The notes: generated by a model from the letters alone, not told the origin. Counted from the stretch's first letter, positions 13,451-50,037 are shown. The stretch is DNA of 56,506 bases from Amphiscolops sp. MND2022 (GCA_964187785.1 CAXLNC010000268.1:1-56506); one strand, 5' to 3'. Program-made: numbers and translations.

Positions 13451-13700
13451 CCCCAGTCGAACTCCCATACATTTCTTGCAAGAATCTTGCAGAAGTGGTA
13501 CATTTCAGACACTATCTGCAAGAATCTTGCAAGAATCTTGGATTTCAGACAAACCTGTCAGATTCTTGCAGATCAGACATTTCTTGCAGATTGAGACGTT
13601 TCTTGCAAGATTCTTGCAGGTCAAGACATTTCTTGCAAGATTCTTGGACGGATCTTGCAAGACAATGTCTGAAACTTGAAAGATATTCTGCAAGAAAATG
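13451..13700 (+). repeat. Left TIR plus subterminal palindromic CTTGCAAG repeats
   Basis: CCCCAGTCGAACTCCCATACATTTCTTGCAAGAATCT followed by more than 10 (T)CTTGCAAGA/CTTGCAGA motifs. Confidence 0.9.
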
Positions 13701-14120
13701 TCTGGAATGTACGGGAAACAACAAGGCTTTTTTCCAATTTTAAACCAGGAATATGTTCAAATTGAATGTAAATGTCTGTTATATGTAGTGGCGCGGACTT
13801 AAATGTGACCAAGAATTCTAAACCAAGCAAGAATTTTGAACCAAGAACCAAGCCATCTTGGAAGAAGTTATGCGACGCGTGCCGTTAACTACCCTCAAGC
13901 GCGCTGTTAATTACCCTCTTGAGTCGAGTCAACTTGTTGACAACAGTTCGAGAGTCTCTTGGAGTGAGTGATGATGAAGAATAAACAAGCCATTTTCAAA
14001 GGAAGCCGACAACTAATGGAATTCCATTCAGGAAAGTTTACGCCGACTTAGGACAATTAACCGGGGTTTTAGCCGCTAAATTGATGTAAATGTCTCGTAT
14101 ATGGAGTCGCACGGACTTAA

Positions 14121-14620
14121 CTGTGACTGAAGATGTTGAAACATGATTTGTTCATTTCAGAACTACCGCGTTTGGGTGCTGTTCGTTTGACACGATGGTG
14201 ACCTAGGTAGGACCTAGCTAGGACAGCCGTCTGAACCGTGCCCTAACTTGCGAGGATCTTGATGAAGGAGCTACTCAAGTGTACATGTACAGTGAGATGA
14301 AACATACGTCAGTTCATCCAGAAATTGTACAGGTGTAAACAATTTCTGCTACTGCTTCCTATACAACAGGTGCAGCCCAGAAGGTAGTCTTATTCTTTTT
14401 GAAGTTTGGACATTCGGTCCACTTGACAGCAACAACAAACTTGAATCACATATGTCGAAAGAAATCTTAATCGTTGAATAAGTGTACAAATTTATATTTA
14501 TTTTTATCTATATTTGTATTGCTGATGCTGTAAAAAGTTTTCATTTGGAATTTTCAGACTCTTTTTTTAATTTACTTTCAACATTCAAGCATTTCCTTCC
14601 AAGTTAATTCCAAGATCAAA
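14121..14620 (+). repeat. Internal segment repeated in direct orientation at about 49201-49740
   Basis: Shared blocks include CCGTGCCCTAACTTGCGAGGATCTTGATGAAGGAGCTACTCAA and GAAGTTTGGACATTCGGTCCACTTGACAGCAACAACAAACTTGAATCACATATGTCGAA. Confidence 0.9.
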
Positions 14621-15812
14621 AGTGAAATAAAATTGGTTTGCCGAAGGTCAAGGAAACTAGATGAAATCAAGGTGCTTTCCCATCTGCAAAATAGTTTAAG
14701 AAAGGTTGAAAACGGGTTTTAGTTCATCGGATTCCGCAAATTGTAAAGATTTCAATGTATTTTTTGTTTCGAAAACACTCTAACTTAAAAAATGATCGCT
14801 TTTGTACACCACGAAAAGTTCATTACCTATTTTAATACATGTATTTTTCAATTTCGGCAAGTAAATGGAAATCCAAATGTAAATATATGTAAAAACCATA
14901 TACGTCACAGAAAATTTGATAATAATAAGTCACAGAAAAGAATGAATGAAACGAAAATGCCGAGTACGGCTACTTTCCCATAGGAAAAGAATGTAATCTC
15001 ATGCCGTTCTGTCAATCAATTGAACTCGTCAGAACTAACGACACTTTTTATTGGCTCATATTATCAAAATCCCCACTCGGCCAATCAGAAGCGTTGTTAG
15101 TTAAGAGTTATTAGAATGTACAAATCAGTAGTTAGTGGTAACGGTGAAAAAAATCCAAACAAATGAGGCTAAGAGACAAGTGAGCGAAACTACAGTAAAA
15201 GGTATACTATTGGACAACAGATTCAAATTAAAAATCTAGTTGAAAGCTGTGAGAAATCAACTTTCACGGCGAAAGAATGACAAGCAGAAAATGATTCCGT
15301 TAATCTTACGGAAAATTCCAATTTAGATTGCTGAAAATATTTGAGCTTTGGACCATGTCATCTATTCCCCCCGGTACATTTTGTTAGGAATTCCTCGCCC
15401 CCAACACGAAACCACATTTTCGTCTTGAATAATTGTCTCTACGACTGTTTGGACACTTCAGGCAAAACAATTGCCATAAAGTTTTAATATTATTGTCCAA
15501 AATAGCAAAAATGCACGCTTGGAACAAGCTAGAATGGTCTAAAAAGGTTGAGTCCTGAAATAACAATTGAATTTACATGTTTCGTAACATTGTATTATTT
15601 TGCACAAACTAGGTATACCGTAAAAAAACTAGGTATACTGTATATATTTACATGTTAGGAACTAGCAACAAAATTTGATTATGATAAAAATATATAACCA
15701 GTTAAAAATTACCAGTTAGTACAAATGTTGGTAACTTAAAAGTAGAAAAAGAGCACCTTTCAGAGAGCACTGCAGTTATTTTAAAAGTCCAGTGGCGAAC
15801 TTGTGTATGCCT

Positions 15813-16708
15813 TCATGGCAACTTCACGGCAAATTCATTTTCCTCAGTCTTTGTAGATGTGAAGGAATTTCCTCGTCCGGCTAGGCAGTAGAACTCGTTG
15901 TCGTCTAGTTTGATGTCATAAATTTCTTCAATTTCTCTAACAGATGGTTCGTTCAGCTCCTCCGTTTCCGCGGGGGGGAGAGGGGTTTCGTTTTCTTGGT
16001 TGTTTTTATTCAGGGCAGGCGCTAGCTCGGGCATATAGTCCGGTTCTTCATTGTCGGATTCACTCTCCTTTTGTGTTTCTGCAACGAAAGCCTCTTCTTC
16101 ATCAGACTCGAAAGTAGATTCGAGTTCAGCCTCGCTGCCCCTCCACACTTCTATTGATGAATTTAGCATCCCCACCATATTTAAGGGCAGGGTTTTAATA
16201 GGAGTACTGTACCTATCAGGGGTGTTCAATTAAGTTTGCAAAGAAAAATTATTGCAATTGAACAATTACAATTATTTATTTAGCGACTCGGTGTTCCAAC
16301 AATTTTTGATTGCGCGTAATCCTGCGGGGTGATTATTAATTGCAGTGTAGCATTTTAAAGTATTGGTTTTTTTAGTCGAGCGAAATTTATGATGACTGAT
16401 TATAGAAAGGAACTTTCGCCAAGCTATTTTTAGTCTCAAATGTTTTTGATGATAAATGAAGCATTTTGGACTCATTTTGATGTTCAAGAAATTTTGTAAA
16501 TTCAAGTTTCTTCATCAGTTTGTTTGAGTACAATAATTTTTTTATTTTTTTTTAGAAGTGGAAAATTACAATATTGATTTTTGTAGGCTCAGATTTGAAT
16601 ATATTGATTATTTTGAGTCAATATATGACAATACAAAAATGAACACCCCTGGTACCTATGGTTCTCCTCATCCGATGAGATATCGATAACGAGGGCGTAG
16701 TTATCCAT
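15813..16708 (-). CDS. Predicted 150-aa acidic orphan protein (exons 16708-16656 and 16212-15813; intron formed by a MITE)
   Basis: MDNYALVIDISSDEENH + RYSTPIKTLPLNMV... joins in frame once the MITE and one TSD copy are removed. D/E-rich; no recognisable domain. Confidence 0.55.
16217..16651. mobile_element. 435-bp hAT-type MITE, precisely spliceable
   Basis: TIR CAGGGGTGTTCA / TGAACACCCCTG; perfect 8-bp TSD GTACCTAT (16209-16216, 16652-16659). Confidence 0.92.
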
Positions 16709-16835
16709 TTGGTCAAAAATTTGGTTAAATTGTTATAATTTAAATTATAACTCAAATTTGAGCAAACTGCTTTTTTCGATTGATGTACGGCAAATGGAGG
16801 AGTCAACTTTCCTTCGTAATTTTCACTGAAATTTT

Positions 16836-16940
16836 ATTGGCCGGTTTGCTTCCGTCTGCGCTGGGATTGGTCGAAATATGAATTAAAGATTTTGTATTCT
16901 ATTCTTCGTTTCATTCTTTACTGACGCTGTTATGACGTCA
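16836..16940 (-). promoter_or_regulatory. Putative promoter of the acidic ORF (two CCAAT boxes + CRE)
   Basis: ATTGG at 16836-16840 and 16866-16870 (CCAAT on the minus strand); TGACGTCA at 16933-16940; 130-230 bp upstream of the ATG at 16708. Confidence 0.3.
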
Positions 16941-17216: not shown

Positions 17217-19045
17217 CACATTCATGGATTTTTTCTCAGGAACAGTTCTGCTTAAACTTTTTGTTTAGATATATCCCTTGCGAGAAGGAATTTCCAATTC
17301 AACAGCTTTGAAGCATCACAATCTAGCGTGAGCAGAAGATGTCAATCAATACGCCAACATTTGTGTGATGCAAGTAGAGATGCAACTGAGTGAAGTCTCC
17401 AAGACAATTTGTACTCCTGAGCCGCCTGAGATTGGTAGAATTTGTCGGGGCGAAGGCAATTTAGTAGATGAGTTTGCGAATTTATGTCCAGCAGACATAG
17501 ACGTTGGACAAATCTTGGAGACCTCACACGTGTGACTAAATCTGATGTTGTTCGATGTATTAGCAATTTGCGAAGGGGCTCCTCCAAATATTAATCTTTT
17601 ACATCATTTTGTTCTGTGATGTAAACTTGATAGCTATAAAGTATACTCTGATGTTTTACTTTTATGTCTACCATTGTCTTTGCGACTTTGGTTTTACTTG
17701 TAAGTCTTGAATATACAGTTTTATTTACATTTATTTCGTTTCAATGCCTGTGACTCGGGCTGTTCAAAACAGTTTAGTGCCCTGAAGATATTATGAGATA
17801 AAGAGAGGGGCTATTAATTTAATCTTCTGTCTAGCGTGAAATTCTGCTATTTTGGACAAAATTACCAAAAAATAGGGTCTTTTTCACTGAAGAATAGATA
17901 CGTCTTTTCTATAATCCAGCGCAATAGTTGACAACAATTTGTTTTATTTTTCGGGAACTTAAATAGAAAGCGTTGAAAGCAGGAAAGCTTGCGGTCGGCG
18001 TGATCAAACGTCAAAACCACTTCAACATGTTATCATCATAAATATTTTTCAAAAACACATTAACGCGTTTATTCAGATATGAATTTTTCCCGCATTATGA
18101 AATGTTTAAACAATATAACGTCTTCACCTGATGATGATAGCTAATAAACATTCAAGTGGAAGATATCAAAGATTCATTTTATGTTGCCGCGTTGTTTAAT
18201 CGTGTCGGTTCGGGTTAGAATCGGGAATTCCCAAATTCTTGTAGAAACGTTTCCCACTTTTCCAAGTACGAGAGTTTTCACAGAGTATTTTTATTATTCA
18301 TTCAACTAATTTCACGTAAACGTAAACATCTCGCTAGTTGTCTGACTTTTTCTCACAAGAAATCATCTTTCTGTCTTAACACCTTAACAGGTTCTCACAT
18401 CAGCTGCATCTTCATGAAGAAACCTTATTGCAAAACAAATTTGAAAAATGTATACAGAAACTCACTCATCCCTGTAAGGCAGAATTCAATGCATTGAAAC
18501 TTGCCCAAGAGGGATGAGTGAATTTTTGTTTATATTTTTCAAATTTGTACTTCAATAAGGTTTCGTCTTGAGTCAAGTTATTAAAGACTGCCATTCACAA
18601 TTGTCATCCACGTGTCCCAAACTCAATTCCAATGCCCACCAGTCCGCAAGATTGCTGAGCTGTCTTATTTGTATTTTACTGTTATTTAGCGACTTCATTC
18701 AGGTATGCAATTAAATATTCTGCGCGTCAAAGGAACGAATCCCACGGAAAGTTGAATTAAAACTCAAAAATGTCTGGAAACTTAGCTTCAGTAATAAGTT
18801 AAAGTGTTTCGTTTCCTATAGTAAACAAGAGGTAAAAAACACTTGCAAAAGAACATGAAAAAGTACAAATTAGATAGCTAAACTCTTAGTAATTGACAGA
18901 TTAATAATTAGTATTTACAAATTTTTATTATTCGTTTGATATTGCTGTGGGTTTTTTATTGTGTTTCATGGTTTATGGGGTTTTGAAGCCGTTTCCAGAC
19001 ATTGCGGTATGTACTAATAGCTAATTTGTGTTCTCCCGTTATAAA

Positions 19046-19756
19046 TTTTTGTGCTTTCCCGTATAATTTTTTTTTGGCCAGTTTTTGGTGTACGTCATTG
19101 AGAAACATTTGAAACACTGGGAAAATTTTTTATTAAATCTGAAATGGGAGGTTTTAAATTCATCAAGGGATTCCAAAAATTGACATATACACATGCAGCA
19201 GGTTTCAACGGAACATTATTTTGGCTTCGATTTTTGTGCTTTCCCGTATAATTTTTTTTGGCCAGTTATTGGTGTACGTCATAGAGAAACAACTGAAACA
19301 CTGGGAAAATATTTTATTAAATTTGAAATGGGAGGTTTTAAATTCATCAAGGGATTCCAAAAATTGACATATACACATGCAGGAGGCTTCAACGGAACAT
19401 TATTTTGTCTTCGATTTTGTGCTTTTTTCGTATAATTTTTTTTGGCCAGTTATTGGTGTACGTCATAGAGAAACAACTGAAACACTGGGAAAATATTTTA
19501 TTAAATCTGAAATGGGAGGTTTTAAATTCATCAAGGGATTCCAAAAATTGACATATACACATGCAGGAGGCTTTAACGGAACATTATTTTGTCTTCGATT
19601 TTGTGCTTTTTTCGTATAATTTTTTTTTCGGCCAGTTATTGGTGTACGTCATAGAGAAACAACTGAAACACTGGGAAAATATTTTATTAAATCTGAAATG
19701 GGAGGTTTTAAATTCATCAAGGGATTCAAAAATTGACATATACCCATGCAGGAGGC
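19046..19756 (+). repeat. 184-bp tandem repeat, about 4 units (related copy at about 30280-30510)
   Basis: Repeat-derived ORFs recur at 19193, 19377 and 19561 (period 184). The unit contains GGGAGGTTTTAAATTCATCAAGGGATTCCAAAAATTGACATATACACATGCAG. Confidence 0.92.
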
Positions 19757-20290
19757 GTCTCGGATTTGTCCAAAAAGCGTCAAAGGAATGAAAATCTTCC
19801 AAATGCGGATGAAAATAAAAGTAAAAACGATTGAAAATAAACGTGTCTCGGATTTGTCCAAAACGCGTCACAGGAATTAAAACATTCCAAACGCGGATAA
19901 AAATGAAGGTAAAAACGAATGAAACTCAAGGTGTCTCGGATTTGTCCAAAAAGCATCAAAGAAATAAAAACAATGGAAATGCGTATGAAAATGAAAGTAA
20001 AAACAATGAAATCAACGTGTCTCGGATTTGTCCGAAAAGCGTGACAGGAATGAAAACATTCCAAAAGCGGATGAAATTAAAATTGTTCATTTCTTTGGAA
20101 GGAGAGTTGCTTCTCCGCCCGGCTGGACCGTAGCTGAATTCTCACAAGAAGTGATCACATCTGCAGTCTACCTGTCAGGCTAGAAATAGAGGAGCAGCTG
20201 CTAGAGATCACCCTTCATGCAGAGGTCCAACCGAGACTAATTTATATTGGTAACTGCGAAAGCTGTTACCATGCTAGAACACTGTATGAT
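19757..20290 (+). repeat. About 87-bp tandem array (AACGTGTCTCGGATTTGTCCAAAAAGCGTCACAGG...) followed by a conserved tail of about 210 bp
   Basis: The same array plus tail occurs at 37116-37807; an inverted tail at about 35274-35415. The tail has a GGTAACTGCGAAAGCTGTTACC hairpin followed by CTAG. Confidence 0.8.
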
Positions 20291-21207
20291 TTCAATGCAA
20301 ACTAGGTCGCGATAATGGTATTTGACCCTTCTGTCTTATTCCCCACCCCAGCCGCAGTTTGGGGGGGGATTGAACACATGGTCCACAAACTTAGACAATA
20401 CCATGGAACCTTTTCTATAATTCAACGCAGACATCATATTGTTTTAATTTTCAGGAAATCTGAACAAACTTTAGAGCAAAAAAGCATCTTGTCGGCGTGA
20501 TTAAACATCAAAATTACTTCAACACTTTATCATCAGATGATAATTATTTCAAAACACAATAACGCGTTCAACGTTTAACGTTTATAATGCGGGAAAAGTT
20601 CATATCTGATTATAGTCAGATATGAATTTTCCCGCAATATGAAACATTTTAAACATAACGTTTTTGAAAGGATCGATCGCTAATAAACATTCAAGTCGAA
20701 TATATCAACGAGTCATTCCATTCCATGATATCGCCAGCCGAAGAGTCAAACACTGAATGTCTTTTGAATGTTGAAAACTGAAAATTCCAAGCCGATTACG
20801 ACTTGGAGTCTAAATTCCCATGTGAGATTCCCATATGTGAATTGAGTAGTTGGAATTCACACTTCCATAGAGCATCGAAAGCTATTGCATTAATAAAACA
20901 ATTACATTATTAACATATTGCGAACTTCTTTCTTCTTGCTCGGCACAGTCAACTCTGTGAAAACTATCGTACTTGGAAAGGTGTGAAAATTTCTACATGA
21001 TATGTATTATGTACATTTTATGTATATAGAATCCTTTCACACCTTTTCAAGTACGACAGTTTTCACAGAGTCATCCTAACACCTCAACACATCAACATTT
21101 ACCACCTCAATATCTTCTCACACCAGCTGCATCTTTATTATATTTTGCCGAACAGTGAGTAACTGTAAACCATTTTTCAGATTTTCCTTATAATTGCGAC
21201 TTGAATC

Positions 21208-21598
21208 GGCTCTTTTCTGTTTCCCCACCCCACCACCAAAATTTTTGGAAGTAAATTTTCTTAAAAACTTTAGACTAGTCTAATTAAAAGTAAAACCGTA
21301 TTTCATAATGGGAAGTTAACGTCTATTGAAATTGTTTTTTGCTTGAAAAAAACATTGTTCACGCTTTTTGACTATGATTATGTTCGTATTAAGTTTTTAT
21401 TGATGACTTAAAACAGGAAGCTGTTAATTTCTTCATCAAAAATGTGTGACTACTCATTGAAAAAGTGTGAACAAAGTTTTTATCGGAATCCTAAACTGTC
21501 ACACTAAGAATAAATGCAAGTTTGAAGATTTCTGGTTTGTATTCAAGTCTTTTTGGTATACGATTTCCACTAATTTTCCAGGGAAACAGAAAAGAGCC
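21208..21598. mobile_element. 391-bp MITE, GGCTCTTTTCTGTTT TIR family
   Basis: TIRs GGCTCTTTTCTGTTTCCC / GGGAAACAGAAAAGAGCC; perfect 8-bp TSD CTTGAATC. Confidence 0.9.
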
Positions 21599-22388: not shown

Positions 22389-23040
22389 AAAAAAATCAAC
22401 GTGTCTCGGATTTGTCCAAAAAGCGTCACAGGAATGAAAACATTCTAAATGCGGATGAAAATGAAAGAAAAAACAAATAGAGCCAACGTGTCTCGAGACA
22501 CGTTGGCTCTATTTGTTTTTTCTTTCATTTTCATCCGCATTTAGAATGTTTTCATTCCTGTGACGCTTTTTGGACAAATCCGAGACACGTTGATTTTTTT
22601 GACACCGATCGGAATTGACCAAAAAGCGTCACAGGAATGATAACCTTCCAAATGCGTATGGAAATGAAAGAAAAAACGATTGAAAATCAACGGGTCCCGG
22701 ATTTATCCAAAAAGCGTCACAGGAAAGAAAACATTCCAAATGCGGATGAAAATAAAAGTAAAAACGATTGAAAATCAACGTGTCTCTACTTTGTCCAAAA
22801 AGCCTCAAAGGATAAAAAGCATTTCAAATGCGTATGAAAATGAAAGTAAAAACGAATGAAAACTTTCATTGATTAATTTGTTGATTAACCAACGTGTCTC
22901 GGATTGTCCAAAAAGCAACAAAAGGATGAAAATATTCCAGATGCGATTGAAAATGAAAACTATGCCTAAACGAAAATCAGCATGTCTCGGACTTGTCCAG
23001 ACAGCGTCAAAGCGATGAAAACATTCCAAATAAGCATGAA
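22389..23040. repeat. 87-bp satellite array starting with a perfect 212-bp spacerless palindrome (22389-22600)
   Basis: The 106-bp arms are exact reverse complements centred on GTGTCTC|GAGACAC. Plus-oriented degenerate units follow. Confidence 0.9.
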
Positions 23041-23049: not shown

Positions 23050-23240
23050 CAAGAAAAAGACAATCTTGAAAATAATTTTTCAACCGAGGAAGATATTACC
23101 GTGCCCGGAATATCAGAAAATGATGGAAATGGGGAAATGAAAGAAAATACTAGTTCCAGAGTAGGGAAGTATAATCTTCGACCTAACCCCACCCCAACTA
23201 CACTTTTGAATACAGATATTAGACTCAAAACTGAATTTTC
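23050..23240 (+). pseudogene. Remnant resembling the C-terminal end of a Gypsy pol
   Basis: ...SSRVGKYNLRPNPTP, resembling the RY-LR-type tail often seen at the end of Gypsy integrase. Isolated fragment. Confidence 0.35.
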
Positions 23241-23490
23241 GTCACCTCCATTTTAATAAGTATAGTGTTTTTCAGGGGGACACAACAGATTAACTGATTT
23301 AGTACTAGAATAACCTAACTTTCAGGCAGCACAATAACAAATAAATACAAAGCTGCACTCAACAACTTTACAAATCAAACTGAAAAGAAATATAAAGCCG
23401 GAAACATAAATAACATCAGACAACATGTAAGATTGGCTATAAATGCGTGACACGCGAAGTTTAAACATCAATCCTTTGAAGAGCTTTCTC

Positions 23491-26400
23491 TCAGACTTGT
23501 GACACTCCGAAACATTGACTGGTCCGAACTCGACGGGATGTGCGAAGAGGAGCCGTCTCAGACGAAAATCCCTCTGGTCCACGAACCTTGGTTCGTCGTG
23601 GGCCTGCTCGTGACGCTTGAAGACTTTTGTAGCTGGCTGAAAGCCTCTTATGAATCTTTGCTCGACCAAAGAGGTCGACACTGCGCCAAGGATCATAGGT
23701 TGCGTCGAGTCCACTGTCTCCGAAATCAGCAGTCAGGGCATGGAAATCCTCGAGAGCACTATCAGAGGTACATACAGGTACCGAGTAAGGAAGGTTGGCG
23801 AGGATAGATTGTACAGGCATGATAACATCCGTAGAACGACAATTCAAACTATCAGTGGTAACCGCTCCGAAACGAACGACTGGCAATGTAGAGGACTTAT
23901 CGGTTAAACATAAGCAGCTAAGTTTGAACAGATAGTAAATATGTCCGCGTTTTTTGAGAGCTGGCAAATTAGACAAGAAGTCAACAATGTCATGCAAGGC
24001 ACTAGGGCTTGAAGTCAATGAGACACGAGACCCCCTCAGATGGGTGAGAACTCCAATATACTCATCCCGGCAGATTTGCTCATTGGTGTCTTGTACCCAT
24101 CCTCGAAGTCTGAACCCACGGTAAAGATCGGCGAAACATCGGGTGGCGAAATTAAGGGGCATCTCGAACATGACGTGGGGATCGAAACTGGCCATCCCCC
24201 GGACGTTATTTGTAGTCATTGTCACATGTTTTCTGACTCCTTCAATCAGAAAGAGGTAGTAATGGCGAGCCAGATCACAAAATTCTTTTTTGAGTTCGGC
24301 AACTAGATCATCAGCCTTCGCTCGGTCCAGCTTCTTATCGCTGAGTTCAGCAGCTGCCTTCCTGTTCAAAGCTTGTTCCAATTTCTGACTTAAGTTAAGT
24401 CTGTGCAGGAAGTCGTCGGGTAGAAGAGCCTCCTGGCCTTCAAGGTGCAGGGACAAAAGGCCGACCCAGTCATCATCAGCAGGGATACAACGGTCAATCA
24501 AGCAGCGGACGCATAACTTACGGATAAAGCGGGAGAGTTGTTCGAACACATAAAACCCAGCATCGCGCTTATTGTTCAAAGATTGGTCGAAGCAAGAAAC
24601 GACTGAAACCAAATATACACAATCATGTGATCTAACCGAAGTAGGAGTTAGTAAACAACAAGGTTGGCATTGTTTTAAACAAGTGTTTTAAACACGGGAT
24701 AAAAAACATGTTTTAAATAGCATTGAAAAAAAAACAATATTTTTTATTTTGTTTTCTTTCCCACTACAGTATTATGACACAAAGCTTGTCTTCTGTGTCT
24801 TCTGTTTTGGAAAACTACTTAAACCTCTTGTACAATCATTTTCATGGGGCTTCTCTTACTTCATCTTAAAACGTAAAGGGCTTTGATTATTTTCGACATT
24901 GTAAGTCCGATATCATTCCTGAAATAAATAAAATTGACTGTGTTGTATGTTTTTATTAGACGAGTCTGTAGTTATTTAGCATTTCTTTAAAAAACAAAAA
25001 AAAACAAAAAACATGCATTTTTCGAAAAATTCAAAAAAACTGTGTAATACAAAAAAACATGTTTGAATCGCAACCTTGGTAAACAACGTACTCACAGTCA
25101 TGGATGATACGGGAGAAAAGCTCGAGACGCACAGTGAAGAGGTCGTCCATTAGGATCATCCAATCTAGGGATTGAGGCTAAAAAACAAGATTAAGGATTG
25201 CTACACTGGATTAGTGGATGACAAGAACTCAGGGGAGTGACTCCTAAAGAGGAAGTAAACCTTGTTTCTGATTCCTTGCCATTCTTGCTTCCACTGTACT
25301 TTCGGAGGAAGGAAGAAACCTCTGCCCAATGGGTCAACAGTTCATGGCACAGGTGAGGCAAAGACAGCAAGTCAAATTTGCAAGCGACAATGGCCTGGGA
25401 AAGAAAAACAGGAAGGCAACATAAACTCTTTCAATGGAACATTGATGACAATGTGAGGACACGTGACATAAAATATACATTACCTTGGATAATTCAGGGC
25501 ATTCCAATGTCCAGGGACAAGTCAGACTGCCACCAAGAGACACGATCAAGCCTTGCAGGACTGAAAAGAAATCAATTTGCTGGAAGACACTATGGCTGTC
25601 TCGGTGCATGATGGTCTGTAAATCCACGCTCTCAAAGCGGAAAGGGGATTGTAAAGTCCGCTTGAATATCCCTGAATCATCCACTGTCTGCACAAAATCA
25701 ACAGGGAAACCAGAGCAGGCTACGAACTGTGGTCTGGTGGACACCACGGACAGAATACGGGACAGGGCTCCCAACTCTCCTGCTAGCGGGGGACTTTGTA
25801 CTCCGTAACGGCAAAGGAAGACTTTCACGAGGTTGTCGTCTTTCCAAAAACGCACATACACGAATTTGAATCGTCCAGATTCCTCAATTTCTAGAGCAAA
25901 TTGTACTGTGATCAATAAGTGCTGTCCCAGATCTCAAAGGCACACAAAGAAGTGATGGAAGATAGCCTGAAAAAAACTCAAATTACAACAACATAAAGTC
26001 GTAACTACAAATAGGGAAGACACAATTTACAGACACTATAAGAGGATAGTTTGACTACAAAGAAAGCAACTACGGGTGAAATACGAGTACTTACTGTGAT
26101 TCTCTCATCACTCCAGTCGAAATCGGAAAAGAGGCTTTGATGGTTGGTGAAGATACCAACATTAGTCCAGATACTGCGCAATTGAGCAAAATTTCCTCCT
26201 GTCTTGAGATAATCACCGATGAGACACAGCTGAGTATACGATCGACTAGTTCCTGGCGTGACACTGACCCTTGAGGCCTTGAAATCTTCGTAAAAGGGAA
26301 GTTTGTCTCCAATTTCTACCAGTTCTTCCTTAATGAACTTGGGTAATTCCTGCTCCAACTCGAGGTGCCCCAGCAAATTACCTCTCTTGTCCCTGACGAA

Positions 26401-38966: not shown

Positions 38967-39092
38967 CAGGGCTGGGTAAAATACAATAAGTGATTACAAT
39001 ATTTGCAATAATTGTGGAAGCAAAAAAATGATAATTGCAATAACTGTGTACAATGGTAAATATTGAGAGAATATTGATTGTACCCAGCCCTG
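38967..39092. mobile_element. 126-bp hAT-type MITE
   Basis: TIR CAGGGCTGGGTA / TACCCAGCCCTG; 8-bp flanks TCTATAGC / GCTATAGC (7/8). Confidence 0.85.
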
Positions 39093-39310
39093 GCTATAGC
39101 ACTATCTTTTCTGATAAGAAAAAAAGTGCTCTAATTTTTCCGCATTTGAAAACTTTGGCTTTGAGCCCCTTCCCTCTGTTGAGAAAAAGAAAGAACTAAA
39201 TAGGAAATACCGCATAGGGTACTTTCCGTTGAGAAAAAGAATTATTGTATCAACTTTGCTCCGAATTTGTCACGGTTCTTATTAGCTCAGCTGTAAATTT
39301 GTTTTCAGAG

Positions 39311-39826
39311 ATGTCGAATATCACCGCAGTCAAAAACGTCAATTGGAAAAAGCTGGCTGCAGTTGATGCATCCCTTACCAGTGAAGTTATAGATTCTTGT
39401 GGAATTAGAACACACAAAATTCAAACAGAGTTTACAGCTAACGAGGATTCAGTGATTGTGGAATCCTACCTGAGGACGCAATATTTAACAGCAAAAAACA
39501 CGTTGTCGTTTAAACCAGTGAATTACTTGACCTCGGAAAACTACACCCCAATGGGCGTATTTGCGAAAAAACCGTTTCCTGAAGGTAGTAAAATTGACGG
39601 CCTAACAGCTTTTTTATCGAAGATGCCGGAGGAAGAAGTCAAGGAAGGTGAGAATGATTTTTCACTGATAGAGAGTGGGCGGTTGGGACGACAGTGGCTG
39701 ATGCTTGGACCGCTAGCATTTGTAAATGCTTCTTGTAAGCCAAACATAGAGTATAAGCATGAAGGTAATCAATGGTGGGAACAACCCAAACTTCAAATCT
39801 TTTCATTTTTCGGAAATACTGAATAA
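39311..39826 (+). CDS. Suv4-20/KMT5B-C-like SET domain gene (SET1), 3' part of the domain missing
   Basis: [26 protein letters not shown] parallels Suv4-20 [59 protein letters not shown] parallels [33 protein letters not shown]. Candidate donor AAG|GTAATC after 39764; no next exon found. Confidence 0.8.
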   Translation: [171 protein letters not shown]

Positions 39827-40777
39827 GAAAACAATCTGAAACAGGGTTGTTGTGTTTTTAAACATTTGTTTTTCAACACCTGTTTTTAACATAATATTTA
39901 ACGTTTTTCAACCATGATTTTTCAACATATTTTCAACACCCTCAATGAATCATTTGTATTTCAGAGAAGAAAAAGCAAATTTGACAATGGAACGTTTATC
40001 AGCTCAAATTGAAATGGTGTTTTCCACCATTGGCTTTGCGTACATTGATAAAAGAAACAGATTTGGGCTGCAAAAATGGCTATTGTCCTTCGCCCCTTGC
40101 GTTGTGATGTTGTTTTATTTCAACGACGTTCTTAACTTTCTCTCAATTTTTAAGTGTTTTTAACTTTATTTAACGTTTTTAACGCTTTTGAACGTCAAAA
40201 TGTTTTCAACGTGTAAAAAATACAACCCTGATCTGAAATCTGAAATACAATTTTCAAAAAAAAACAATTTCCAATTTCAATTTTCACTTTCACAAATAAT
40301 TGTTTCCCTCCTTTGAAGGTAATATCATGCTTTAAAATGTCATCGAAGACATCCGAGAAGGAGCCGAAATTGTAGTCTATTATCATAAACATTACTTTGG
40401 CGACTTCAATGTTAATTGCTTGTGCCCCTTCAAGTCTAAGCATCGTGAATATTTCACCGACAATTTACCAAGGACGAGAATAGCAAAAAAACGCAAAACT
40501 CATGAAATACTCATCTTCGTATGTCAAAGATTAAAAACTTCATCTGAAGATTTCAACTACTTTTTGCCCATTACCTTGGCAATTTTTAAATGCTCAGTTT
40601 ATTTTTATTAGTATTCGTATGCTGAATATACTGAAGAAGAAAATATCATACCAATACCGAACAATAATTGAATTTGTTCACAACAGGTCCGCTCAAATTT
40701 AAACTTTGGTCATTTTTTACTTGAAACTCACATGAAAGTTTATAACTATAGTTATAGCGTCTTCTTCCATTTCAGAT

Positions 40778-43700
40778 ATGTCTGGCAACATCGTCATTCC
40801 TTGGCGAAAACTGAGAACGATAGATAGCTCTATTTGGAAGCAGACTGTCGTTGACAACATAGATTTCACAACAGAGATGTCAACGAGTACGAGTGAGTAG
40901 ATATCTAGTGATAAACATATATAAACATATAAACATTATCGGAGACTCAAATTCGAAAATTGTTTTTGAAAAAAAGGAAAAACGAGAAATGAAGTAATCA
41001 AATGAACATCATTCAAACGACTGCGAAGCTTTTGATTATTATTGATAAGTATTACTCAAGTCCTCGTATTTACAAGAAAAATATCGAAATTTCAACGAAA
41101 ATAGAAAAAAAGATATGAGTTTTTGAAATGCAGTTTGTCTTGAAATATTTTTTCAGGTACATCTGGCGACGATGATTTGTTGAGAAAGTTTCTCTCATCA
41201 GAGTATGGTATCTTCCGAGAATTATTTCAACATAAGCAATGCAGTGGAGTCATCACCAGACAGCCGTTAGAAAAAAATGTGATGCTATCAGGATTGATAG
41301 GCGTTGTTGCCTCGATATCTACTGAAGAATTTCTGGAACAACAACAAAAGGACTTCATGGTCTACAGAAAAAGAGAAGAAGAGGAGTTGTTTCTGCTTTG
41401 AGGGCCTTTGTCATTGGTTAGAAACTCATGTACACCCAATGTTGACATTATAAAGTCTGGAAATGTTTTGTCCTGCCAACCTACCAGACATATTAGCGCT
41501 GGTGAAGTAATTTCGCCAGGATTTGATGTTTTTCATTCAAAAGAGTACAGTTTCAGCGGAAAAGAAAATTTAGATACAGTAAGTCTTTTGTCACAACAGA
41601 CTTTAATGGGCTCTCCAGTTCCAGTGAAACGACCGTATTTTCTCTCATCGACTCCTTTACATCGTGTTCGTGATCCTTTACATCGCTTCTCAATCAACGT
41701 ATCTCGAGTTGAAGAACAAACACCGGAAGACGATACAGACGAAGAAGAACTTCTGAACTATGATGACGTTTTTGGTGATTATGGCAACCGAAGTGATGAG
41801 CGTTTAATCAGTATCGAGGACAGCAACAGTATTGCCCAAAACAACAGCGAGACCCAAGACGATACAGCAGAAAATCAACCAGATAATTTCATTCTGGAAG
41901 AAGACATACGAAGTAAGTTTATTTACTTTGCTATAGCCTTTTCGACAACCCGTTTGTCGGAATACTATTGTCTGATTTTCAAATTACCACTAGGTGTACA
42001 GTAATACACTGGTAACTACATGTACAGCGAATTAAAAAAAAACATCAATTTCCAAATAACATTCTGTTCATATTTTGCCATGAAAGTTACATTGAGGAAA
42101 CTTGCAATTTTTTTTCAAAATTTCAATAAACCAAACTTTTCAGCGAAAATATTAGTTTTTAAAGAAAAAATTAATGGTTTTTGTTCTAACTTTGTGATTC
42201 GCATTTTCGGGACGTAGCATTAGGATTATATCAACACAGTGGATGTTAACAAAAACTCTAAAATTACGATTTAAAAATCATACTTATATTTGGAATTCTT
42301 CATTTTTTGAGGAAACGATCAAGCATCAGACTCAACTGGAGACCCTGGCAAGCTACCCGGCGAACCACCTGGCGAAACACCTGGCGAACTACCAATTGTT
42401 CATGGATCAGCACATTCAGTTTCTTCTTTCATGAGAAACCTCCAATCCTTCCATATTAGACATAAAACTTCCAAAGTTGCTCAGAAAGAATTGTTACGCC
42501 TAATCAACAATTTTTTTGGTCCTCTCCAGATCTCATCAGAATGTTACTTGGAGGAAAAACCTTGTCTCACTGTTTTCGACTTCGCAGATTGCAAGTTAAT
42601 CTGTGTAGACGCTGTAAAACAACTCCAGTTTTTGATAAACAGAAGTTTTCGTCATATTGAGAAATCTTGGCATGCTGATTGCGATTTCCAAATACCACAT
42701 TACCCGATGAAAAAAGGTGAGATTCAGCTAAATCTAAATTTGGATGGAGTGCCTATTTTCAAGTCTCGGAAATTCAGCATTTGGCCTTTCTGGTTACAAG
42801 TTGTTAATTTGCCTCCAAAACTGCGGTCATCTTTCAAAAACAACCTTTTGTTAGGATTGTGGCAAGGGATCTCAAAACCTGATTGGGAAACGATTTTACC
42901 AAAAATTAGCTTTGAGATGGAATCTTTGGAGAAACCGAGTTTCAACGAACATATCGGAACATTCAAATGTAAATTTTGTCTACTAATCTGCGACATGCCT
43001 GCAAAAGCTGCTGCTTTGAACATGAATCAATTTAATGGTTTTAATGGGTGCACCCATTGTTTGATGATTGGGAAAAGAGAAGATCATCGCACGTTATACC
43101 CTTGTACGGATAACGCTCCCTTAAGAGATGAAAAAAGTTTTTCGCAAAATGCTAAGAAAGCCGAGGAAACCAAAAAAAGTTGTCGCTGGCATCAAAGGGC
43201 AGTCTTTTCTCAAGTCACACTTCGCTTTTCCCTGGGATGCTCCAGTTGACCCGATGCATCAGATTTATCTAGGCACAGGAAAATCTCTGAAAAAGCTTTT
43301 CGTATCGAGCTTGAAAAAATTTGAATTATCAACATTGAATACATTTTTGCAAATTTTAAGAATACCCAATGAGTTCCTCCGTCGCCCAAAGAAAGTTGAA
43401 GAGATTTCATATTGGAAAGCTGGTGACTTCAAACTTATGTTTTTACACATGATTCCGCTGATCATTGGCCAATTCAAAAGTCTTGCTGATGAAAAGAAGA
43501 AAAAGTATCAAAAGTTTTCTTTAGCTGTTCGGTTATTGTCCCTGAAGCAGGTTCGTGAGGAACATGTGAAGGAAGCTTCTTCTCTGATTCAATCCTTTTT
43601 TTCCAACTTCACGGAGATTTACGGAACAAATATGCAATCGTATAACTTTCATTCAATGCGACATTTGTGTGATCAAGTTCGACGAGTGGGACCTCTTCGG

Positions 43701-44276
43701 AACACATCAGCTTTTTCTTACGAATCAGCCAATCATTTTCTTGTCAAAAATGTGGCGGGTACAGTAAAATCACCAGAAGCTATCGTCGAGGCTTTTTTGA
43801 AATCTAAAGAAGTGTTCATTTGTGATGATACCGAACCAGATTTTGAAACTTTGAAAAAGTTTTCGAAAGTTTCTACTGATTGTCACAACTTCTGCAAAAT
43901 ATTCCCAGGTCAACAAGACTTTTTTGGTCGCTTCCGTACTCCTGACGGAGTAATTCTATCCTCTTTGTCCTACTCAAGGCCGAACGACAATGTGTCAAAC
44001 TGCGTTATTCAAACAAGAAGTGGGATTTTTGTACAAGTGGAAAGTTATCTTTCCATTGAATCTACTTTGTTTGCAATTGTCCGTACATTTCGGAATGTCA
44101 AAACCTTTGACGAGTTACCACGCAGTTTGCAAACTAATTTTTTGTATCGTTTAGAAGATCTAGGGCCACTAGAGAGAATTAATACGGATCAATTGGCGTA
44201 TAAATGTGTTCTGATTGAGTTGCAAAGTGGGACATTTCTTGCCAGTGTTGTTAAAGAAGGATTCGAACATAATTGA
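40778..44276 (+). pseudogene. Predicted SET2-CACTA/CMC transposase fusion gene (about 945 codons; one premature stop, one +1 homopolymer indel)
   Basis: Exons 40778-40892, 41157-41912 and 42312 (or 42330)-44276 are in phase. SET motifs GPLSLVRNSCTPN and RHISAGEVIS. TGA at 41399-41401; extra A in the A7 run at 43172-43178. Confidence 0.6.
42431..44276 (+). CDS. CACTA/EnSpm (CMC superfamily) DDE transposase domain, split by one frameshift
   Basis: LNLDGVPIF, WP..LQVVNLPPKLR, LLGLWQG..KP, CDMPAKA, FNGFNGCTHC, PVDPMHQIYLG, WKAGDFK, YNFHSMRHL, GPLRNTSAFSYES: the conserved CMC motif series including D, DxxH and E. Confidence 0.9.
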
Positions 44277-45218
44277 ACTTTGAAACAAGAGTAATTATTT
44301 TTCGAGAAGAGTACTTAGACGTCTATTGTTGTTCACAAATGAAGTTGTAACTTTTTTAATGGACAAACCATTTTCAGAATCATTTGATGATCATTAACAC
44401 GAAGGATGAAAACTTCGACACTCTTTCGTAAGTTGAATTCGATTGATCTGACAATTGCAATCTAAAATAGTTTTTGTTTTCGTTTTTCTACTGATAAAAT
44501 CCTGTTTTTATTTTAGCACTTACTCTCAGGTATTGATCCGGATCAGGCCCGCCTATACATCAGTCGGAGTCGCAATTTCTAACAAAAAATGCAGAACCTC
44601 TCGCGGTAAGTTTGACCAAAAATTGAGACACAAGACTTTCATAATCCCTCTCGTTTTTTTTGAAATCTAGACATCTTTTCATCATTTTCCATAGAAAACG
44701 ATATAATCATTATAAAAGGATCATATTATAAAATGTTCATTAAGAAATGATGATAAAATCGGCTCTTTTTCCTTTTCCTCCCCACACTTTTCAAAGAAAA
44801 CAAACTCAACATAAAGGATTATATTTGACTATATCATTCAATATTTCTTCGAATAAAACTTTTCCTTTGTTTTGTTGTGTCCACACTATTAGAGTAGGTT
44901 TCCGCTTGAACAAAACATTGTTCACACAATTTGACTAATTATGTTCGTATTGAGTGATGACTCAAAACAGGAAGCTGTTGATTTCTTCATCAAAAATTCG
45001 TAACTACATAGGAAAAAGTGTGAACAAAGTTTGTATCTGAATCCTAAACTATCCCCCTGAGACTAAATTTAAAACAACTGTTTCATTGGAAACGTAATTG
45101 AGATATATTTAATTGCAAAAACATCATCTTGAAAAGTGTAGGGGGGAAAGGAAAAGTTCCATAAACTCAATATATAAAATGATATTCCGCAAGATGACTG
45201 ATTTGGAAAGCAAATTTC

Positions 45219-45629
45219 GGCTCTTTTCTGTTTTCCCCCCCACCACCAAAATTTTTGAAAATAACTTTCCTTAAAAACTTTATACTAGCCTAATTAAAAG
45301 CAAAACATTCTTTCATAACAGGAAGATAACTTCTATTAGAGTAGTTTTCCGCTTGAACAAAACATTGTCCACGCTTTTTGACTATAATTATGTTCGGATT
45401 AAGTGTTTATTGATGACTCAAAACAGGAAGCTGTTGATTCTTCATCAAAAATGCGTAACTACATATTGAAAAAAGTGTGAACAAAGTTTGTATCTGAATC
45501 CTAAACTATCACCCTGAGAATAAATTTGAAACTGAAGCTTTCTGGTTTGTATTCAAGTCTATGTGTTATAAGATTTTCAATAATTTTCCAAAAAAAATTT
45601 GGTGGTGGGAGGGAAAACAGAAAAGAGCC
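45219..45629. mobile_element. 411-bp MITE, GGCTCTTTTCTGTTT family
   Basis: Long TIR including CCACCACCAAA; perfect 8-bp TSD CAAATTTC. Confidence 0.92.
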
Positions 45630-46155
45630 CAAATTTCTGAAATTTTGGACAACGTGTACACTACGTGAGCGACCTCAATTAGGCGAAGCCGAGACAAGAA
45701 ACGAGACAACTACTACTCGCATCCAATACTGACGTCACTGACGAGTCCGCGCGACAGAAGGCAATTACAGCGTAATGTAATGTAATGTATATACTGGTGA
45801 CGTCGATTATAATAGCGACGTCACAGAGCAACTTGAAGAAACAAATTATTCCACGTGTCTCTGTTTTGTCCAAAAAGCGTCAAAGAAATGAAAACATTCC
45901 AAATGCGGATGAAAAAAACAGTAAAAACGATTGAAAATCAACGTGTCTCGGATTTGTCCACAAAGCGTCACAGGAGTGAAAACATTCCAAATGTTTTTTT
46001 TTCGTTTGATTTTTTTCGTTTTTTGGCACTATGCGACTTTTTTTTCGAAAATTTTTGGGTTCTATCAAAAAGTAACCCCTTGCATTTTTTTGTTGAAGTT
46101 TTCGGTTTGTAAAAACGTTTAATGGGCCTGAATGGCCTCTTTTTGAGTTTTTCGA

Positions 46156-46572
46156 GGCTCTTTTCTGTTTCCCCCCCCCCCCACCACCAAGTTTTTTTTT
46201 GAAAACTAGTGAAAATCTAATAACAAATAGACTTGGATACAAACAAGAAAGCTTCAGTTTTAAATTTATTCTAAGGGTGATAGTTTAGGATTCAGATACA
46301 AACTTTATTCACACTTTTTCCCTATGTAGTTACGCATTTTCGATGAAGAAATCAACAGCTTCTTGTTTTGAGTCATCAATAAACACTTGATACGAACATA
46401 ATCATAGTGAAAATGTGTGAACAATGTTTTGTTCAAGCGGAAAACTACTCTAATAAAAGTTAACTTCCTGTTATGAAAGAAGGTTTTACTTTTAACAAGG
46501 TTAGCCTAATGTTTTTAAGGAAAGCTATTTTCAAAAAATTTGGTGGTGGGGGGGGGAAAACAGGAAAGAGCC
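46156..46572. mobile_element. Inverted copy of the GGCTC MITE family (no TSD); partial copies at about 38220-38590 and 44810-45070
   Basis: Same TIRs; the interior is the reverse complement of 45219-45629. Confidence 0.8.
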
Positions 46573-46574
46573 AA

Positions 46575-47275
46575 AAGTAAAAACGATTGAAAATCAACGT
46601 ATCTCGGATTTGTCCAAAAAGCGTCACTGGAATGAAAACATTCCGAATGCGGTTGAAAAAAAAGTAAAAACGATTGAAAATCAACGTGTCTCGGATTTGT
46701 CCACAAAGCGTCACAGGAGTGAAAACATTCCGAATGCGAATGAAAAAAAAGTAAAAACGATTGAAAATCAACGTGTCTCGGATTTGTCCACTAAGCGTCA
46801 CAGGAATGAAAACATTCCAAATGCGGATGAAAAAAAAGTAGAAACGATTGAAAATCAACGTGTCTCGGATTTGTCCAAAAAGCGTCACAGGAATGAAAAC
46901 ATTCCAAATGCGGAAGAAAATAAAAGTGAAAACTAATGAAAATCAACGTGTCTCGGATTTGTCTGAAACGCGTCACAGGAATGAAAACATTCCAAATGCG
47001 GATGAAAATAAAAGTAGAAACTAATGAAATCAACGCGTCTCGGCTTTGACCAAAAAGCGTCACAGGAGTGAAAACATTCCGAATGCGAATGAAAAAAAAG
47101 TAAAAACGATTGAAAATCAACGTGTCTCGGATTTGTCCAAAAAGCGTCACAGGAATGAAAACATTCCAAATGCGGATGAAAAAAAAGTAAAAACGATTGA
47201 AAATCAACGTGTCTCGGATTTGTCCAAAAAGCGTCACAGGAATGAAAAAACATTCCAAATGCGGAAGAAAATAAA
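46575..47275 (+). repeat. 87-bp satellite array, about 8 units (short array also at 45855-45990)
   Basis: A 29-codon unit SKKRHRNENIPNADEKKVKTIENQRVSDL repeats in ORF 46610-46936. Confidence 0.92.
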
Positions 47276-48404
47276 ACTCAAAACCAGAGAAATTTCTCTG
47301 ATTTTTACTTTCATTTAGAATTTTAATAGTAATTTTATTTACTTTTTCATTAACGAATTCTTACTTTTCTTCATTGACAATTGTTACTTTTTTCCGATAT
47401 TCCAAGCACGGTAATAACTCCTTCGATGAGAGAATTATTTGCATCCCTTGAACACGAACAATAGTCAATTTCCGTTTCTTCAAAGAGTACAACTACTAGG
47501 AAGAATTCAAATAATAAATTGTTAACTCAGGACTCATGCAGTAATTACAGGCATAACAAACATATGTAAGATGTGAGGACAGAAAAACAAATGTAAATAT
47601 AAATGGTAGCAATTTTATAAATACAATTTTTGATAGCAAGTTTGTGTTTTCGGTTCTTTGTTTATGTTCAAGTCGAGCCAATCGGGTGAAGAAACTCAAA
47701 GAGACCCTAACTGAGCCAAACACATTATACATTGAAGGTAAGTGCAGAAGTTAACCGAAAACACCCGAGATGCATTCATGCCTTTCAAAATGTTGACAAA
47801 TCCACTGAGTCTTTTTTAGGATTGTTGAAGACATGTCTGCAGGCGAATTTCAGTCGAGGCAACTCAGCTTGAACAACTAAAACAAGTAAAACAATACCAA
47901 CTAGAATGAACCTCAAAACGGCTGCAAAATGAATAACGTAAAAGTTATTGACACTGCAGTTGAACGTGTTTTTTGCGTTACTCATTTTGCAGCCGTTGTT
48001 AGGTTCATGATTACATTCAACTAATTTTTTGTTCAGTCGCGCTGTCCAGAATTCCTTTCAGCCAATCATGTTTTGCATCATGTTATCACCATACTACAAA
48101 GTGTCATCTTAAGTTTGCTATTCCAGAACTACAGCACCGCAGATACGTCTCGACTCGAGGTCAATTTAAGCTGACATAGAGACAACAAGGAACATGGAAC
48201 TAAGTAAGTTCACTTTTGCTCCTTTTCGGTAGCCTTCGATTGTTTCGTAGTTCATTCCTGAAGCGAATTCCAGCAGAAGTAACAATATTCTCAAAATTGG
48301 GAATAACATCTAAAAAATGGGAATAATGTCTAAATATTGAGACGTTACTGCTGAAAATTGAATGATATTTAGACGTCTAGATTTGGATCTTTTCTGTCAA
48401 TCCC

Positions 48405-48566
48405 CCCACAGTAAGCGCGAAAAATTTTAATTCCCCAACACTCCCCGGTAAAATTGTTCCTTTAGACGTATTTCCTCATAAAATTTGATAGACTTTTTAA
48501 ATTTAAACTTCTATAGACGTTATTATAATAACGTTGAGGAATTAAATTTTCCCCGCTTACTGTGGG
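48405..48566. mobile_element. 162-bp MITE with CCC termini
   Basis: CCCACAGTAAGCG / CGCTTACTGTGGG with imperfect extension to about 35 bp. No clear TSD. Confidence 0.6.
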
Positions 48567-49200
48567 TGGTGGGGGAGGCTAATAAATAGACAAGATTTGT
48601 GATCACCATGTTTCATAGTATGAGGAACGTTGAATTCTAGATTGAAAGTCGAACGTTTCTTTCTCTCCAATGTGATCTCTCTCTGACACGGGCGGACTGG
48701 AACAAAACATTTGTAAAAGAAGTACCACTGCAAGAGAAGCCTTTCGTATTTTCGAGTTAGTGAAACATTTCTTGAATCCGTGACGCCCCCCACCGCGGCT
48801 AGTTAGTACTTATAAGCAAATGCCGTATGGGAAAAATATCAAATGTTTGCATATGAATTATTGCAACTACAGCATACTTTTGCAAACTTTGACCTGCTAA
48901 TTTGTATTAAGAGGAAATTATTCAAATCAACGCAAAGGACATGTCAACATGATAGTATTGGAACCTTGTGTACCATATTATTGGCAAATTAGCATGTTTT
49001 TTTTCTATTATATCCCTTTCGGGCAAAATTGGGACTTTCAAAACAGTTTACCAATTTTCAATTATTCAATTCAATAAAAAAAAATAATCAATATATTAAA
49101 CGAAAACAAAGTTGAGATCTTATTATATTACAACTAATTCATTCGTTATTCCTCACTATTTTGAAAATTAACTATGTGTCTTATCCCCCAATAAACTATA

Positions 49201-50037
49201 ATGTGACCAAAGTTTTTGAAATATGATATGTTTATTCTAGAACACTCGGTTTTGGGAGCTGCACATTTGCCACAATTGTGATCTAGGACAGTCGCTTGAG
49301 AGCCGTGCCCTAACTTGCGAGGATCTTGATGAAGGAGCTACTCAAATGTACATGTACCGTGAGATGAAACATACGTCAGTGCATCCAGAAAATGTACAGT
49401 TGTAAACAATTTCTGCTACTGCTAAATAAAAGGTGCAGCCCTGAAGGTAGTGTTTTTCTCATGAAGACGGAAGCAGCAGACTACCTGCAGAGTGATTTGG
49501 ACGACGAGTGATTCGTCGAAGTTTGGACATTCGGTCCACTTGACAGCAACAACAAACTTGAATCACATATGTCGAACGAACTCTTATTCTTTGAATACGT
49601 GTACATATTTATCTTTATCTTCATCTATATTTGTTTTGCTGAAGCTGTAAAAATCTTTCATTTGGAAATTTTCAGACTCCTTTTCCAATTTACTTTCAAG
49701 ATTCAAGCATTTTCTTCCAAGTTACTCTCAAGGTTCAGGCATTTTCTTCCAAGATACTTCCAAGATCAGGCATTTTCTTCCAAGTTACTTCCAAGATCAG
49801 GCATTTTCTTCCAAGTTACTTCCAAGATCAGGCATTTTCTTCCAAGTTACTTCCAAGATCAGATATTTTCTTGCAAGATCTTACAAGACCAGACATTTTC
49901 TTGCAAGATCTTGCAAGACCAGACATTATCTTCCAAGATCTTCCAAGATACCTGCAAGAATAATGCATTGTCTTCCAAGATCTTGGAAGTGAAATCTGAC
50001 AGATTCTTGCAAGACATGTATGGGAGTTCGACTGGGG
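49201..50037 (+). repeat. Right end of the large element: direct-repeat segment, CTTCCAAG/CTTGCAAG subterminal array, right TIR
   Basis: Homology to 14121-14620; tandem TTCCAAGATCAGGCATTTTCTTCCAAG units; ends GTATGGGAGTTCGACTGGGG at 50037. Confidence 0.9.

Follow-up and report, generated by a model that had tools for sequence, protein, structure and literature searches.

A large multi-gene DNA transposon of the Mirage group, very probably moved as a single unit in Amphiscolops sp.

A stretch of 56,506 nucleotides from Amphiscolops sp. MND2022 (GCA_964187785.1 CAXLNC010000268.1:1-56506; hereafter the window, to which coordinates refer unless another locus is named) contains an interval at positions 13451-50037 that very probably represents a single copy of a cut-and-paste DNA transposon with several genes, which belongs to the Mirage group of the Chapaev-Mirage-CACTA (CMC) superfamily and moved as a unit. 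The ~37-kb unit is inserted at at least two different sites and probably at three or more, each complete copy being bounded by the same 37-bp terminal inverted repeats (TIRs) and by a 2-bp target-site duplication of its own. Cut-and-paste transposons with a DDE transposase usually measure a few kb and carry one or two genes. The element described here is an unusually large, gene-rich animal transposon of a known superfamily.

A second complete copy was reached by a protein search with the C-terminal transposase open reading frame (ORF) of the window, which returned a 614-aa relative (P0001) with 94% identity. This copy, stitched from four overlapping loci (L001-L004), lies at record positions 64315-101480 of contig ctg182156_91x_l (154,578 bp; ENA ERZ25074608). 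It is 37,166 bp long and collinear with window 13451-50037, with 98.97% identity over 35,778 aligned columns and only eight indels of at least 30 bp, which are mostly changes in tandem-repeat number. Its TIRs are perfect over 37 bp, its flanks (...GCGCTCA / element / CACATT...) are unrelated to those of the window and carry a CA duplication, and the similarity between the two loci stops to the base at both TIR tips. A third copy (L007, contig ctg184891_99x_l) matches the right 13.5 kb of the element (36545-50037) and shows the same right tip followed by a third flank starting with AT; its left part is cut off beside retroelement genes (gag/protease-like). In addition, the cluster formed by the transposase at 90% identity has 32 members, and the 15 listed sit on 13 different contigs, with at least five distinct intact 614-aa ORFs on five contigs. 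The first-pass annotation, which was made from the sequence of the window, had set as a test that other loci should show the same gene order between the same TIRs in different flanks; copy 2 provides such a locus in full and copy 3 at its right end.

The boundaries of the element can be read directly in the window, which contains no N. The left TIR (13451-13487, plus strand) starts with CCCCAGTCG and the right TIR (50001-50037, minus strand) differs from it by one mismatch over 37 bp; similarity with copy 2 ends exactly at the former, and similarity with copies 2 and 3 exactly at the latter. Exactly two sites of the 22-nt terminal sequence CCCCAGTCGAACTCCCATACAT exist across the window, one on the plus strand at 13451 and one on the minus strand at 50016-50037, where shuffled sequences lead to an expectation of 0. 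In all copies the termini read CCCCAGTCG...CGACTGGGG (CCCC...GGGG), and in the window they are flanked by a duplicated TT (13449-13450 and 50038-50039). Tandem-repeat arrays lie just within both ends (13563-13646 and 49683-49949). The left subterminal array (13475-13661) carries the palindromic CTTGCAAG motif (TCTTGCAAGA), and the right one (49683-50013) consists of 8.6 copies of a 31-bp unit with CTTCCAAG and CTTGCAAG motifs. For the palindromic core CTTGCAAG, 21 occurrences were counted where 1.06 would be expected. They are confined to the two element ends and to a nested miniature inverted-repeat transposable element (MITE), and a scan of the window for end motifs, which cluster solely at these places, found no inner termini nearer the transposase gene.

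Removal of the element and of one TT joins in frame the two pieces of an interrupted reverse-transcriptase (RT) ORF of the host retroelement, a putative Gypsy element, on the plus strand (left, 13329-13450, 40 codons and TT; right, 50040-50262, a G at 50040 followed by 50041-50262), restoring the junction ...AATTGGGGCTTGTTATTGGGA...; that no RT codons are missing at this point is suggested by the continuous frame and by the usual spacing of RT motifs. The flanks are the two halves of a degraded retroelement pol gene, in which the sole domain signal is a weak RT_RNaseH_2 match at 50420-50761; a DSG protease-like motif was also noted in the flank ORF at 12725-12988. A 3.1-kb tandem duplication in the left flank (6923-10055 and 10047-13176, 97% identical) doubles the gag-like ORF of the host retroelement; the ENA contig described below, which starts at 9637, confirms its second unit only. 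At 55412-56257, a 281-aa gag-like ORF with a zinc knuckle resembles those at 8714-9184 and 11832-12302, suggesting that another retroelement copy starts beyond the truncated pol. The search for an empty-site homologue of the RT junction gave none, the only full pol compared (in L011) being too distant. The four structural claims made beforehand, namely the 37-bp TIRs with one mismatch, the TT duplication, the subterminal repeat arrays at both ends and the RT frame restored by excision, are all confirmed, by direct reading of the ends and of the joined pieces, by the count of CCCCAGTCGAACTCCCATACAT, and by the tandem arrays and the enrichment of CTTGCAAG.

A +1 frameshift interrupts the transposase gene of the window copy (42431-44276, plus strand). 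The ORFs 42431-43249 and 43128-44276 jointly match P0001 and are separated by one extra A at 43172 (seven A's instead of six), and the 614-aa frame is intact in other copies. In a Pfam scan of the window ORFs, the transposase was the sole one above threshold, its N-terminal ORF matching DUF1258 with 38.7 bits (cut-off 33.1). The Transposase_21 score (19.9 bits) falls below its cut-off of 28.6, and DUF4218 is also sub-threshold. A DUF1258 match is likewise precomputed for P0001, P0004, P0005, P0006 and P0009. DUF1258 characterizes the Mirage group and Transposase_21 the CACTA elements (PMC3985635), and the above-threshold DUF1258 match places the element in the Mirage group by domain. In an alignment of seven relatives that are 22-46% identical, D105, D273-x-H, E431, C207xxC210 and H411 are invariant. 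The CMC clade is defined by a DDE triad together with C(2)C and H(3-4)H motifs (PMC12730594), of which the DDE triad, the C(2)C and the second His of H(3-4)H are found here. The short target duplication of CMC elements (2-5 bp) is found as well: it measures 2 bp in all cases read (TT at the window copy, CA at copy 2, AA at the nested MITE and TT at a MITE in the flank), which is consistent with animal CMC elements (PMC6004678). On these sequence features, the transposase belongs to the Mirage group of CMC and not to CACTA proper. The earlier label of a CACTA/CMC transposon thus stands for its CMC part, by DUF1258 and motifs, and falls for its CACTA part. CACTA/En-Spm proper was rejected on account of the Transposase_21 score below cut-off, the CCCC termini and a target duplication of 2 bp rather than 3 bp.

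The core of the element comprises an acidic protein, one or more BEN-like proteins, a KMT5-like SET protein and the DDE transposase, and its order is kept in families whose transposases are 39-43% identical to that of the window. One of them (L005) comes from the same sample and encodes a transposase (P0003) with 43% identity in the C-terminal portion used for the search and 46% full-length. It holds homologues of BEN-like gene 'b', the acidic ORF, BEN-like gene 'a', SET and the transposase, of which all but the first follow each other as in the window, with identities of 55% for BEN and up to 64% locally for SET. The other (L006) comes from another sample (ERZ25071359) and shows BEN-like gene 'a', a SET gene with a Pfam SET match (E 1.4e-9) and the transposase (P0006) in the order of the window, with identities of 37% for BEN, 41% for SET and 39% for the transposase. 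The 365-aa SET ORF of this locus (L006 8947-12004) shares 44 nt with the 667-aa transposase ORF, the two being read in different frames, and a read-through or fusion product of SET and transposase is therefore conceivable.

Two BEN genes had been proposed in the first-pass annotation, and both are supported by profile and fold evidence. BEN-like gene 'a' (33094-34086, plus strand) is made of the pieces 33094-33357 and 33745-34086, which form one 196-aa ORF in L006. BEN-like gene 'b' (34673-34978, plus strand), which has a homologue in L005, is a distant homologue of gene 'a' (hhalign probability of 87%, E 4e-6, against the gene 'a' profile). Direct Pfam and PDB sequence searches with the window ORFs 33745-34086 and 34673-34978 gave no matches. 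A profile built from four homologues of gene 'a' recruited 73 relatives, 5 of the 53 scanned match Pfam BEN (PF10523, best E 4e-6), and no other Pfam family was matched by more than one of the 53. Supporting this assignment, the AlphaFold model of the window BEN ORF has a mean predicted local distance difference test score (pLDDT) of 84.6, and its top 14 PDB matches in Foldseek are all BEN domains (Bsg25A, BANP, NACC1, BEND6 and Insv), with probabilities up to 0.92 and TM-scores of 0.43-0.59. Membership of the BEN family is thus assigned through the profile matches of relatives and the fold model.

The two Suv4-20-like SET regions of the first-pass annotation are likewise borne out by matches to KMT5B/C in the PDB. 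SET gene 1 (39245-40608, plus strand), of the KMT5/Suv4-20 type, is made of the pieces 39245-39766 and ~40339-40608. A GT follows 39766, and the second piece is placed approximately by the uninterrupted SET genes of relatives. SET gene 2 (41282-42214, plus strand) is a divergent duplicate, which forms a 304-aa ORF in copy 2 and is open over 41402-42001 only in the window. The Pfam SET signal on window ORFs is marginal (E 0.012). Among solved structures, the ORF 39233-39823 of SET gene 1 matches only KMT5B/SUV420H1 and SUV420H2 (E 2e-9), SET gene 2 matches KMT5B (E 7e-4) and the SET protein of L006 matches KMT5B/C (E 3e-11); all PDB matches at E <= 0.001 are KMT5B/C. The NHxC motif, which is NHDC in KMT5B/C, reads NASC, NAAC and NASC in the three lineages (NASC in SET gene 1) and RNSC in SET gene 2, so that none of these element-borne SETs has it intact. 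The His of this motif is commonly mutated to inactivate SET enzymes. Since it is replaced by Ala in all three lineages, the SET proteins of the element may lack H4K20 methyltransferase activity and serve instead as non-catalytic binders or competitors.

The acidic ORF that had been pointed out is also present, in fact twice. An ORF of 138 aa lies near the left end (15816-16229, minus strand), for which neither relatives nor domains were detected by homology comparison and Pfam. A second one of 161 aa (31935-32420, plus strand) is conserved in the divergent L005 family, where a 34% identical ORF occupies the corresponding place.

The BEN and SET genes had been described as cargo, and the idea that they are recently captured host genes without a role in the element finds some ground in the SET genes taken up independently by HarbingerS and by MuDR of Phytophthora, according to studies cited in PMC12730594, as well as in the decay of SET gene 2 in the window copy. 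It is nevertheless improbable: the order of BEN, SET and transposase is kept in both L005 and L006, and the His-to-Ala change in NHxC is common to all three lineages, which points to one old acquisition under constraint. Because L005 and L006 keep their order with the transposase, the BEN and SET genes are, on sequence comparison, long-standing partners of this transposase lineage rather than casual cargo. The presence of a BEN domain and of a KMT5-like SET gene also points to an animal host.

About half of the length of the element is passenger DNA that was aboard before the last transpositions. It includes a multicopy C2H2 zinc-finger gene within a unit on the minus strand (23067-30200), which is GC-richer than the rest and is preserved as the ORF pieces 27448-27972, 26008-27444, 25337-25933 and 23494-24687. 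The gene (23.4-28 kb) belongs to a large family with relatives in ENA data only. A paralogue of the unit (corresponding to window ~30200 to 23067) with 68% identity is found in L011 beside a long terminal repeat retroelement, and no BEN, SET or transposase gene occurs within 10 kb of it. Its occurrence apart from the element marks the unit as a nested passenger outside the core module. The gene is broken differently in copy 2, in which a private insertion of 1,069 bp (L002 2491-3559, near window 27365) disrupts it; this insertion has no clear inverted repeats and shows short CCCCAC microhomology at its junctions. A hAT origin, as first suggested for this gene, is not upheld, no hAT signal appearing by Pfam, PDB or fold. 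The window ORFs and 25 relatives of the N-terminal ORF contain no hAT Pfam domain, the relatives matching only a ZN292-like C2H2 finger and having no precomputed Pfam domain, and neither sequence nor profile searches of the PDB returned a match. For the C-terminal ORF, AlphaFold yielded a poor model (pLDDT 51), to which Foldseek found no meaningful match.

The remaining passengers are repeats. A block at 19045-21580 combines a 184-bp tandem array and an 88-bp satellite with units of which further copies lie at 35.2-38.6 kb and 44.9-47.3 kb, and it is also found in copy 2. A second block at 44886-47284 contains inverted repeat units and eight copies of the 87/88-bp satellite. The nested MITE (36373-37114, 742 bp) belongs to a related family, with TIRs starting CCCTGGTCGAG, CTTGCAAG arrays and an AA duplication, and is inserted inside an 88-bp satellite; it is also present in copies 2 and 3. 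The 184-bp array at 19045-19756 and a lone homologous unit at 30215-30518 are direct repeats that flank the region of the zinc-finger unit and might bound a larger nested element of ~11.5 kb. Outside the element, a 190-bp MITE of the same kind occurs at 2944-3133, with TIRs starting CCYAGTGACACGAATCTTGG, internal CTTGCCAAG repeats and TT flanks, indicating that related small elements with 2-bp duplications populate the genome.

This nested composition lends itself to another explanation, in which a non-autonomous element of ~1.5 kb inserted in the retroelement and was filled locally by 35 kb of unrelated insertions, the block never having moved whole. The interior does hold nested repeats, a related MITE and an independent gene unit, and the left 1.15 kb ends in a 390-bp direct duplicate of the right subterminal region (14218-14606, plus strand, ~90% identical to 49283-49724), as if a small element had been split. 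However, the nested pieces and the 390-bp duplicate are common to the window and copy 2, which carries the same 36.6-kb interior between the same TIRs at another site with another duplication, and the lack of similarity between the flanks shows that copy 2 is a different locus. Serial nesting therefore has very little chance of accounting for the whole. The copies are also long and ~99% identical, as recent segmental duplicates would be, and duplication without transposition could be proposed for them; this is equally implausible, since in copy 2 the shared sequence breaks off at the exact base of either TIR tip, as it does at the right tip of copy 3, and since the direct 2-bp duplication differs between the two complete copies (TT and CA). 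Taken together, copy 2, copy 3 and the transposases spread over many contigs lead to the rejection of both explanations for the whole structure. The nested parts being common to the copies, they were aboard before the last moves. Hence the two halves of the initial proposal, that the block moved as a unit or grew inside a smaller element, are both true, nested growth predating the last transpositions.

That ends from different loci were joined through collapsed repeats, for which the repeat-rich interior and a 212-bp palindrome differing between assemblies could be invoked, is the least probable explanation of all, as copy 2 independently has the same internal order and the locus as built by a second assembler agrees at both junctions. 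This ENA metaMDBG contig (ctg175121_113x_l, 45,782 bp; L008-L010) corresponds to window 9637-55621 with 99.96-100% identity. A misjoin at this locus, which had been named at the outset as a possible refutation, is thus unlikely, and contiguity is supported by the contig spanning both junctions. The sole structural difference between the assemblies amounts to ~200 bp at 22389-22600, a perfect palindrome of 212 bp within the 88-bp satellite with two 106-nt arms that are 100% complementary and have no spacer; the ENA contig is ~200 bp shorter there, which reflects an assembly artefact or a polymorphism.

Several observations weigh against the assignment of the interval to a Mirage element moved as a unit, or against parts of it. 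The termini CCCC...GGGG are not the CA...TG or CAC...GTG that CMC elements have in most cases. In P0001, the transposase of copy 2 (L001 10001-11845), residue 407, which is the first His of H(3)H, is Gln, unlike the His of the other six aligned relatives; the His is kept in the sister copies P0014, P0015, P0022 and P0025. Neither an empty site nor an excision footprint was seen. The Foldseek E-values of the BEN matches are weak (0.7-3), though the matches are consistent. Finally, the second assembly and the window may derive from the same reads.

Considering the copies together, a mechanism can be proposed for the Mirage element. An intact 614-aa DDE transposase supplied by sister copies would bind the TIRs, excise the unit and reinsert it through a 2-bp staggered cut. 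Besides a damaged SET gene 2, the window copy has a transposase that is frameshifted, whereas those of sister copies are intact, and it would therefore be mobilisable solely in trans. Short palindromes are bound by BEN domains, for example TCTCGCGAGA by BANP (PMC10206803) and ACATGT by NAC1, and the array core TCTTGCAAGA, itself a palindrome of 10 bp, resembles these known targets in outline. The BEN proteins may act as sequence-specific end-binding factors that recognise the palindromic TCTTGCAAGA and CTTCCAAG arrays and, by analogy with TnpA for En/Spm, could help to pair ends that lie 36 kb apart. The SET proteins may in turn bind or modify chromatin at the element. As a tentative reading, which is less likely to hold than not in its full extent, the element would represent an old animal Mirage lineage with its own chromatin toolkit, in which BEN proteins read the arrays and a His-less KMT5-like SET protein serves as a non-catalytic binder of nucleosomes or of the H4 tail, or as a decoy, so that the element would govern its own chromatin state, bring ends 37 kb apart into synapsis and stay mobile with its passengers.

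Compared with known systems, the element is closest to the Mirage group of CMC, with which it shares DUF1258, the D/D/E residues, C(2)C, the second His of H(3-4)H, the 2-bp duplication, TIRs and subterminal repeats. It differs in its CCCC...GGGG termini, its length of 36.6-37.2 kb and its five or more genes, and it is placed there by its domain. With CACTA/En-Spm it has in common the superfamily, a multi-gene layout and subterminal arrays that suggest a TnpA-like accessory end-binder; it is set apart by its sub-threshold Transposase_21 match, its duplication of 2 bp instead of 3 bp, the absence of CACTA termini and the presence of BEN and SET genes instead of TnpA. A SET domain next to a DDE transposase recalls SETMAR (Metnase), particularly in view of the ORF overlap in L006. 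SETMAR is a domesticated host gene of primates in which SET is fused to a dead mariner; here, in contrast, the two are separate genes within a mobile CMC element. Units of tens of kb that move with extra genes also include Teratorn, a piggyBac-herpesvirus fusion, and the Starships, which use a tyrosine recombinase and carry host-beneficial cargo. The present element differs from both by its CMC DDE transposase and by extra genes that look element-serving or are nested repeats.

Enlarged EnSpm elements with several ORFs have been described in a red alga, where they reach 16-20 kb (PMC6431247); the element of Amphiscolops is about twice the size of these Chondrus elements. Like the SET-carrying HarbingerS and Phytophthora MuDR elements mentioned above, it is a DNA transposon with its own SET histone methyltransferase gene. 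Those elements belong to other transposase superfamilies and, according to the text that cites them, to oomycete hosts, whereas the SET gene of the present element is KMT5-like, duplicated and devoid of the NHxC His. In the literature searched, which did not extend to Repbase reports, no element of the CMC superfamily or its Mirage group was found that carries KMT5-like SET and BEN genes or that matches the present one in size.

The finding bears on the biology of such elements at several levels. About 37 kb moved at once, and the several near-identical copies with intact transposase ORFs mean that the family may still be active, which makes it a natural system for asking how far apart the ends of a transposon can lie and still be paired. 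The passengers, namely a multicopy gene unit, satellites and a MITE, hitchhike in a larger element, which matters for repeat annotation and for how 'gene' duplications are read. Furthermore, the association of a transposase with a BEN DNA-binding fold and a KMT5-like SET fold suggests transposon-encoded chromatin control in an animal, with parallels in the Harbinger and MuDR elements that bear SET genes, in oomycetes according to the citing text, and in the TET-carrying transposons of fungi.

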